64,000 nucleotides of DNA from Adineta vaga (lineage: Eukaryota; Animalia; Rotifera). A program made the position numbers and the translations under genes. Below, piece after piece: positions 21,517 through 24,002 of the stretch; position 1 is the first letter of the stretch, and the number at the start of each line of letters is the position of its first letter. Below the pieces are notes generated by a model. It ran no database searches, had not been told where the DNA came from, and saw only the letters and a list, made by a program, of their open reading frames with translations. The stretch covers positions 7,812,001-7,876,000 of the forward strand of contig CP075492.1 in NCBI GenBank assembly GCA_021613535.1, written 5' to 3'.

Positions 21517-24002
21517 TTAGTTCGAATCTTTCATACCTGGACTTTTTGGTTTACTCGTTTGATGTCGATTGAGAGTAGATGATTTTATAATTCGTGTTGA
21601 TGAATTATCCGATACATCCATTGCTTCAGTTGTTGTTGTTGTACTTCGATATTCATTAAAACCATTTGATCCAGATAGTTTTGAATTGAATCTGTTGTTT
21701 GAAAAAAAACATAATGTCAGATAATCATCGAAGAAATCTTACATTTGAGAAATGTTTTCTGATGATAACATTGCCTTTGGAGAACGGTAACCATTGTTAT
21801 GGAAATCTTCAAAAATCGATGGTGCGACATATGTAAAACCCTAAATCAGATAATTAAGATTTTCTATCGGTCAATATTTTCAAGAAAAACAACCTACCAA
21901 AAACGCTGTGTCTGCACTTGTACTAATCATATTATCATCAGGTGAATCTACAGGTGTTTGTTTGGTAAATTTGATGTCGAATTGACTAACATCATCATCA
22001 CTTTTAAGAATTGGTTTATGCGGTGGATCATAACGTTTTGCATAGACATCATTCCAATTTAAATGACGAAAGAATCCATGATTCTAAATAACAATTTTCC
22101 ATTACAATGCATCTTTACATATAACTAAGTTGCTTACCTTGATTGCTACACCATCTTCTGGTCCACTACCAAGTCGATGACTAACTTGTCGACGAAGTAA
22201 CTAAATATATTAATATTATTAATCATTAGGAAAAGAAAATCTTCGATGTAGTTCGATTATCGCACGATAAACAATATATTTGATTATTTCGTCTCAGTTC
22301 GATCTTATTGATTACTTTTTGCTTGTTTATTTCCTTCATTCTTATTTCATTTCTTCAAATAAGAACGTATTCTTTTTTAAATATCAACAAGCAAATGATT
22401 ATTTCTTCGCATACTTACATTTCGAATTAATTCTCTTGCGTCAAGATTCAAATATGCTGGTAAAATTAATTTACCATTGATGATTTTGTCCATAGTTCGT
22501 TTACGATCGTCCGATGTAAATGGAGGCTAAATTTAATTTGAATAAAATATTCAATAGGATTTATTTTTACAAAAGCAAAGAACTTAGAAACATACAGCAC
22601 CCGTTAACATATCGTACATCAATGCACCGAATGACCACCTAGATCATAGAATGAAAAGATTCTATAAAAGATCATTTTCATCACACAAACCAATCAACAG
22701 CTTTGCCATGACCACTGCGAGTTAAAATTTCTGGTGCCATATATTCAATAGTTCCACAAAATGTATTCGTTTGTCCACCTTCATAGATTGATTCTTTACA
22801 TAAACCAAAATCAGTTAATTTGACATGTCCTAAATTGAAATAAAGATCAGAGATTTCGATTCAATGAAGAAATAATCAATACCTTGTGCATCAAGAAGAA
22901 TATTTTCTGGTTTAAGATCTTAAAAATTGAAATAATTAGATAGTTCCTTCAATCATCAAATTAATCTCACCTCTAAAAAAAACACAGATGATTATTTTAA
23001 CAATTACGAAAACGTTTTTTGTGTAAGAAAACAAACAAACCTGTAAATAATTCCTTGTTTATGAAGATGTTCAATGCCGAGTAATATTTCCGAAAGATAA
23101 AAACTAAAGAAAAAGCAAAATAACAATTATTTACATCACGACATTGCACTTGACGGTTATGCATTCGTACATTCTATCAGAAAATAGAGATAACACTCGT
23201 AATGCACTTTCAGAGGCGCATGACGTTAGCTTTTTTTTTCTTTCTTACATTGCAAATGAAAGCAGAAAAAGACTGAATGTGCATAAATAAAAACTTCATA
23301 TTTTTTTACCAAGCAATATCATCTGAAAAGATTTGTTCACGTTCCAATTGCATAAATAATTCACCGCCTGATAAATATTCTAATATTAAATATAATTTTC
23401 CACCTGTTTGAAATGCATACATAAGATCGACAATAAATGGACACTATTATAAACCGTTTTTTTTTGCATGAGAATTTAAGAGAGAAAATATTCAATTACT
23501 TTAACACATTCGAGAATATTTCGTTCAGCTTTTGTATGTGCTGTATCTTTTGCATTGCGAACAATTCTACAGAAGTAAGAGATAAAAATTTTCGAATCGA
23601 ACCAAAAAATATTTACTTTGCTTTTTTTAAAACTTTCATTGCAAAGATTTTATTTTGATGACTACCGGAAATTTTTCGAACTTGAAAAACTTTGCCATAT
23701 CCACCTTTTCCTAATACTTTTAATAAATGAAAATCATGTGGTGAAACACGTTCTCCACGGGGATTGACTGTTCGTTCTGTAATTTGAACTGTTTCTATTT
23801 GACTAAAATACAGAGAATAATAATAAAGAAGAAAAAGTAACATTTTCAGTTTTTACTTTGTTTGCGATGGATCAACACCAGTATCATTAACGATAAAACG
23901 ATTGTCATCATCATCATCATTATCGTTATTATTGTCATTTGTATCAACTAACGATTGTTGATAATCATTGATTTCTATGGTAAATAACGGTTCGTCCAAC
24001 AT
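21517..24002 (-). CDS. S6K: Ribosomal protein S6 kinase beta (p70 S6K)
   Basis: N-terminal TOS-like [56 protein letters not shown], turn motif PVDSP and hydrophobic motif [10 protein letters not shown]. Confidence 0.96.
22971..22972 (-). other. 2-nt micro-exon (AG) of S6K
   Basis: Minus strand reads ttttttag|AG|gtgag; it is needed to restore the reading frame Y-R-D-L-K-P using canonical splice sites. Confidence 0.8.

Follow-up and report, generated by a model that had tools for sequence, protein, structure and literature searches.

How can a kinase gene be read in frame when the splice sites that flank one of its junctions leave the message two nucleotides (nt) short? This question is raised by the gene for the p70 ribosomal S6 kinase (S6K) in Adineta vaga, a rotifer belonging to the bdelloids, located on the minus strand of the DNA stretch analysed here (the window, 64,000 nt, positions 7812001-7876000 of contig 3, from an assembly of 100.8 Mb in six contigs with ~30% G+C). 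The exon upstream of the junction, in the catalytic loop, ends with ...ATTATTTACAG at 23041, and the downstream exon opens with ATCTTAAACC from 22918. Joined directly, they read TAC AGA TCT TAA, so that the frame shifts and a TAA stop follows two codons past the Tyr; inclusion of the AG found at 22972-22971 gives TAC AGA GAT CTT, which encodes the YRDL of the catalytic loop in frame. This AG is very probably a real, constitutively included exon of 2 nt between two ordinary GT-AG introns, a judgement based on the lengths and ends of the gene's own introns, on the ohnolog found on contig 6 and on the loci of other species.

The gene belongs to the S6K family. Its exons agree with the A. vaga NCBI protein I4U23_013212 (P0161), which carries the protein kinase domain (Pfam PF00069) and the AGC C-terminal domain (PF00433), and whose relatives bear the name ribosomal protein S6 kinase in many animals. 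A protein tree placed the bdelloid S6K clade (support 100/100) as sister to the spiralian S6K, with support of 100/100 for this relationship. Two ohnolog groups, A (88/93) and B (100/96, from Adineta and Rotaria), were recovered within the bdelloids, with a support of 90/90 for A plus B. The exon translations contain an intact catalytic loop (YRDLKPEN), a 12-residue activation loop and the hydrophobic motif FLGFTYVAP; the YRD is complete only when the 2-nt exon is included, as it is in the mRNA contigs. With this exon in the count, the coding region comprises 15 exons. Each of the gene's remaining 12 introns is GT-AG; ten are 50-69 nt long and the other two measure 206 and 218 nt.

The splice pair at the junction, ttttttttag/AG/gtgaga, uses canonical sites and yields introns of 68 nt (intron 1) and 52 nt (intron 2), which are viable lengths next to the other short introns of the gene. 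This internal ag/AG/gt exceeds chance. The hexamer AG[AG]GGT occurs seven times on both strands of the 64-kb window, corresponding to 0.006 occurrences expected in 110 positions, and with a preceding pyrimidine run and a following GTRAG the expectation falls to 0.002; the 11-mer TTTAGAGGTGA is found a single time in the window, with 0.04 expected. A ctaAt motif 17 nt 5' of the acceptor of intron 2 is likely its branch site. A fold of the pre-mRNA bringing the sites together was also looked for, and nothing unusual was found (minimum free energy -22.5 kcal/mol, mean of the shuffled sequences -22.95, z 0.14). The idea that the 68-nt intron derives from an introner or a repeat was discarded, as a whole-genome search with this intron matched only the intron itself. 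A first-pass annotation of the sequence had claimed an apparently obligatory AG exon here, with the Arg and catalytic Asp codons built from three exons. It had located the sites and counted the two-base shortfall correctly, and the claim itself is supported by the mRNA and by the retention of ag/AG/gt in ten loci, both described below.

Public sequencing runs provided the transcript evidence. Runs of the same organism containing about one third of the gene region's words, a fraction equal to the share of exons, were taken as RNA-like, and those containing at least two thirds as DNA. Assembled contigs of four runs were aligned to positions 21400-24050: X1 and X12, which come from two independent studies, X11, and X9, a DNA run. 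X1 and X12 each produced one spliced contig of 530 nt with six intron-sized joints, and 13 joints were found across the gene. Twelve of the 13 were GT..AG; the thirteenth links 23041 to 22920, removes 120 nt and not 122, and was labelled GT..TA by the aligner. The mRNA across the junction reads TACAGAGATCTT, in frame, which is what the first-pass annotation had predicted for cDNA, and in both X1 and X12 it holds two bases beyond those given by joining the flanking exons at their canonical sites. The DNA run X9 produced a single gapless contig over 22175-23267 with none of the joints, indicating that the genome sequence is right and that X1 and X12 represent spliced RNA. The contigs of X1 and X12 differ by several single bases, suggesting two alleles or strains with the same splicing. 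The added depth of the bin 22913-23001 is consistent with a transcript of a paralogous kinase, which has the AGATCTTAAACC stretch in common and stops in a loose end at 22920. Mismatches to the assembly at 22482, 22717, 22725 and 23076 were common to X1 (RNA-like) and X9 (DNA) and were not found in X12; these four single-base differences probably represent the other allele or another clone line, both forms being spliced alike.

At this site the ohnolog on contig 6 of A. vaga has only one intron, of phase 1 and within the Asp codon (TATAGAG/gtgaaac..57 nt..ag/ATCTC). Its donor coincides with the internal gt of the window copy, which has in addition a 68-nt GT..AG segment located 2 nt upstream. 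Sequence homology between the contig 6 intron and either window intron was considered and rejected, since local alignments scored at shuffle level (p 0.25 and 0.39); a partial MAFFT match is thus attributable to chance, and the introns are homologous by position only.

Loci of relatives were reached through a single-exon search that led to a full-length bdelloid S6K in the database (P0004), then to its relatives and to their loci. The arrangement ag/AG/gt was found in eight genome loci: A. vaga group B (the window), A. ricciae group B (two loci), Rotaria sordida groups A and B, R. magnacalcarata groups A and B, and R. socialis group A. Two further bdelloid-like loci, on environmental contigs detected in a metagenome scan by alignment of one exon (L024 and L026), bring the total to ten. 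Alignment of orthologs, proposed earlier as a check, thus showed that five named species, along with two environmental contigs, have kept the internal site. In the ten loci the upstream intron measures 46-68 nt and the downstream intron 52-62 nt, and two canonical introns account for the product in every one of them. Between lineages the intron bodies are at the identity of shuffled sequences (z -1.4 to 1.7). The core TTTAG/AG/GTGA is invariant in the eight genome loci, and the second donor of L026 is gtttgt. The third base of the Arg codon, which occupies position -2 of the internal donor, is A in all loci with intron 2 and A, G or T in those without it, which supports the use of this donor.

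Table 1. Coordinates of the S6K gene and of the features at its catalytic-loop junction, in positions of the window.
Feature	Position	Strand	Remarks
p70 ribosomal S6 kinase coding region	21430..24002	-	group-B ohnolog of Adineta vaga; NCBI model I4U23_013212 (P0161)
S6K start codon ATG	24002-24000	-	read from the sequence
Upstream exon, 63 nt	23041..23103	-	codes (C) + 20 residues + AG (bases 1-2 of the Arg codon); joints 23103/23310 and 22920/23041
Intron 1, 68 nt, GT..AG	22973..23040	-	phase 2, in the Arg codon; gtttgt ... tgtgttttttttag; last bases ttttttttag
2-nt exon AG	22971..22972	-	base 3 of the Arg codon (AGA) and base 1 of the catalytic Asp codon (GAT)
Intron 2, 52 nt, GT..AG	22919..22970	-	phase 1, in the Asp codon; gtgaga ... 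tttttaag
Downstream exon, 36 nt	22883..22918	-	codes AT (remainder of the Asp codon) + 11 residues + base 1 of a Gly codon; joints 22920/23041 and 22828/22882
S6K stop codon TAA	21432-21430	-	in the proximal last exon

The mature message could also arise if a single 120-nt GT..TA intron were removed in one step, in which case the internal ag/AG/gt would be coincidental and the AG of the mRNA would come from 22920-22919. The two bases before ATCTT at these positions are also AG, so cDNA cannot separate a 2-nt exon from such an intron; it fits both equally, and the aligner itself reports the joint in the one-intron form, from 22920 to 23041, with ends TA..AC on the plus strand and no sliding possible. 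Some other points also weigh against the 2-nt exon. Neither a partly spliced contig nor a lariat was seen, and the joints listed for the assembled contigs of the four runs included no half-spliced one. The RNA data come from A. vaga only, and the RNA status of X1 and X12 is a guess made by a program, although the 13 joints missing from the DNA run make this status safe. The comparison among loci, however, argues strongly for two introns. The 3' dinucleotide that a single intron would require differs by locus, being TA, AA, TG or TC in the ten loci, whereas the AG before ATCT and the internal ag/AG/gt do not vary; against a background of intron bodies saturated with changes, the internal site has persisted together with its pyrimidine tract and both half-lengths. 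Scanning from the ctaat branch site would be expected to reach the AG at 22920-22919 and to remove 122 nt, a 120-nt GT..TA intron falls outside the pattern of a gene in which the other introns are GT-AG in 12 of 12 cases, and the donor of the contig 6 ohnolog lies exactly at the internal gt. A one-step GT..TA intron is therefore regarded as improbable. An artefact is scarcely credible, whether as the deletion of two bases from the edge of an exon in the assembly or as a pseudogene copy in decay: the 2-nt shortfall does resemble an indel error and a second, intact ohnolog is present on contig 6, but the independent DNA run is gapless across the region, the same structure recurs in two metagenome contigs and in the independently produced assemblies of four other species, and the gene is transcribed and spliced in frame. 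The gapless DNA contig and the assemblies of the other species rule out the deletion.

A different proposal, which would add to the 2-nt exon and not replace it, is that the arrangement serves as a regulated switch, in which skipping of the exon leads to the stop noted above and lowers S6K output. An obligate order of removal could be exploited in this way, with failure leading to skipping, nonsense-mediated decay and an S6K off switch during starvation or desiccation; such a use is unlikely on present evidence. In favour of the switch, skipping would draw on two canonical sites (donor 23040, acceptor 22919) and terminate the reading frame straight away, exons this small are inherently difficult to include, and the structure has long been kept in both Rotaria ohnologs. 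The skipped form (a 122-nt joint, TACAGATCTT) was not found among the joints of the four runs, although assembled contigs drop rare forms. Furthermore, Adineta group A has lost intron 1, as have L025 and L027, and Didymodactylos carnosus has no intron 2, with no sign of harm in these simplified copies, indicating that the kinase does not need the arrangement; the cost of losing the frame would by itself explain why the exon is retained. A role of the switch in gene regulation is accordingly doubtful, and the suggestion of the first-pass annotation that skipping turns off TOR-S6K signalling found no support, as only the included form was seen in the two RNA data sets and the exon can be explained as a by-product of intron gain.

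The distribution of the two introns among relatives offers an account of how the 2-nt exon could have originated. Both introns are present in group B of Adineta and Rotaria and in group A of Rotaria. The copies with intron 2 alone are those of Adineta group A (A. steineri, A. ricciae and contig 6 of A. vaga), together with L025 and L027; intron 1 alone was found in D. carnosus and in three non-bdelloid S6K-like contigs (L030, L033 and L036, G+C 0.37-0.56); and Lingula has neither. D. carnosus is regarded as sister to the other sampled bdelloids (PMC7943196). Since the position of intron 1 is occupied outside the bdelloids, it predates them, and intron 2 is specific to bdelloids, having been gained 2 nt from the older intron. 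The 2-nt exon predates the split between Adineta and Rotaria and, by parsimony, also the divergence of ohnolog groups A and B. Adineta group A afterwards lost intron 1 precisely.

If only D. carnosus and Adineta group A were compared, the pattern would mimic the slide of an intron by 2 nt, and this family holds the intermediate with two introns. We propose, as a novel reading, that the series from intron 1 only, through both, to intron 2 only is apparent intron sliding by neighbouring gain followed by loss, caught in the act. The protein tree dates the gain of intron 2 only poorly relative to D. carnosus: the position of this species is weak (82/62), with approximately unbiased (AU) test p values of 0.098 with group A and 0.047 with group B, and intron 2 could either never have been gained there or have been lost. 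As a separate observation, another A. vaga kinase (L008, contig 1, ~2185552-2185611) contains a phase-2 intron in the Arg codon of its catalytic loop (IIHR/DIKPENILIG, CATCG/gt..ag/TGATATC). The intron 1 position may be common to kinase families, or it may be a recurrent insertion site.

The arrangement of the sites suggests how the 2-nt exon could be spliced. Just 2 nt separate the polypyrimidine tract and AG of intron 1 from the intron 2 donor, and U2AF at the acceptor and U1 at the donor would be unable to occupy both sites together. Recognition would then take place across each intron separately (intron definition), with successive removal of the two, either order being chemically possible; once the first intron had been removed, the AG would be the plain end of a normal exon. 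Ordered splicing by intron definition is thus a reasonable inference, and intron definition with stepwise removal is also what the authors of the Arabidopsis work on a 1-nt exon proposed (PMC4674806). A comparable scheme has been put forward for 0-nt recursive sites. In evolutionary terms, intron 2 would have been gained 2 nt downstream of the old intron 1, and later single losses would have given rise to the copies with one intron. The exon would have been retained because its loss destroys the reading frame, and not for regulation.

Gene prediction fails at this junction. The first-pass annotation had noted that gene predictors miss such exons, and here the public gene models that lie at loci with the 2-nt exon or are orthologous to them, 13 in number, were without exception wrong at the junction, each in a different manner; the loci themselves were examined for all but three of these models (Rotaria sp. 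Silwood-1 and Silwood-2). The A. vaga model takes a donor farther along by 8 nt and so encodes YRFVYLKPEN, YRGEYLKPEN is encoded by the R. sordida group-A model and by the Silwood models that match it, two A. ricciae models lose 13 residues, and the R. sordida group-B model reads through into the intron. The models of single-intron loci (Adineta group A) give YRDLKPEN, as do the bdelloid-type open reading frames derived from transcripts (P0004, P0156 and P0164). The D. carnosus model P0002 (L016 and L023) skips three exons, passing from FYLSE... to ...AVDW; the sites there look canonical and include no 2-nt exon, and this skip is a separate annotation error.

Other observations concern the remainder of the window gene. 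Two alternative last coding exons of S6K were found on the minus strand, a proximal one at 21430-21479 and a distal one at 21193-21212. The proximal ending codes for ...GNIFKKLFRRRRSTSR followed by the stop and is backed by the X1 joint 21478/21536, and the distal ending codes for ...VINGLV followed by the stop and was chosen by the NCBI model P0161. Both endings were found again in A. ricciae models (P0167 and P0168), and a model of R. sordida (P0162) has the proximal ending; the two may represent a conserved alternative C-terminus of S6K. In addition, X1 and X12, both RNA-like, produced low-depth contigs (~3) within the 218-nt intron (22201-22418, minus strand) and none within the 206-nt intron (23104-23309). 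These contigs could represent unspliced RNA, DNA carry-over or slower removal of the 218-nt intron.

The nearest counterparts of the S6K exon are the 1-nt exons of the plant genes APC11 and VPS55 (PMC4674806; PMC8831610). These exons likewise measure less than 3 nt, lie between two canonical introns, are always included, have long been conserved, were unannotated and are mis-mapped; an intron-definition, stepwise mechanism has been proposed for them, and there are relatives in which one flanking intron was lost. Unlike them, the rotifer exon is found in an animal, has 2 nt and very short flanking introns (46-68 nt), and contributes to the codons of a kinase catalytic loop instead of lying near the N-terminus. 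The order in which the S6K introns were gained can also be read from the four states (neither, intron 1, both and intron 2), which sets it apart from the plant cases.

Splice sites packed as closely as these are also encountered elsewhere. Zero-nucleotide recursive sites of Drosophila were reportedly described by Duff et al. in 2015 and by Burnette et al. in 2005 (both cited in PMC4674806). These sites of long introns, or ratchet points, resemble the S6K junction in that a packed pyrimidine tract and AG are followed by GT and are used sequentially (reviewed in PMC5126111). They differ in that recursive sites leave nothing in the mRNA and subdivide introns of many kb, whereas the S6K junction leaves two frame-essential bases from an interval of 122 nt; the two bases between its sites stay in the mRNA, so it is not a recursive site. 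Fungal stwintrons place two spliceosomal introns in one small interval and are removed sequentially, the inner intron interrupting a splice signal of the outer one, which can be used only once the inner intron is out. By contrast, all four splice sites of the S6K junction stand complete before any splicing and its introns adjoin without being nested, which distinguishes the junction from a stwintron.

Among animals, micro-exons of 3-4 nt are known, including 3-nt exons in hth (PMC7392893), MAP4K5 (PMC8632122) and cytohesin-1 (PMC6314551) and a constitutive 4-nt exon in MPC1 (PMC9929638). They share with the S6K exon a very small size, an internal coding position and the tendency to escape aligners and annotation; that of MPC1 is likewise constitutive and not a multiple of three. 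Unlike the S6K exon, they have at least 3 nt, lie between long introns and, in several cases, show alternative, tissue-regulated use. In surveys, the definition of an animal micro-exon starts at 3 nt (PMC7935315), so that 2 nt falls outside their range. In a literature search of a limited library, no earlier report of a 2-nt or 2-bp exon, or of bdelloid micro-exons, was found.

The S6K exon is an ultra-short constitutive micro-exon, notable for its occurrence in an animal, its size of 2 nt, its contribution to catalytic-loop codons and its traceable origin. Exons of less than 3 nt probe the limits of splice-site recognition, and this is an animal example in an essential growth-control kinase, with RNA support and deep conservation, in a genome of short introns where intron definition should rule. 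At loci of this kind, the bdelloid S6K models lack the catalytic Asp or whole exons, so that S6K seems broken or divergent in the proteomes, and similar hidden exons may underlie other apparent frameshifts. All four intron states have been preserved in the family, which thus provides material on the sliding of introns as opposed to their neighbouring gain and loss.

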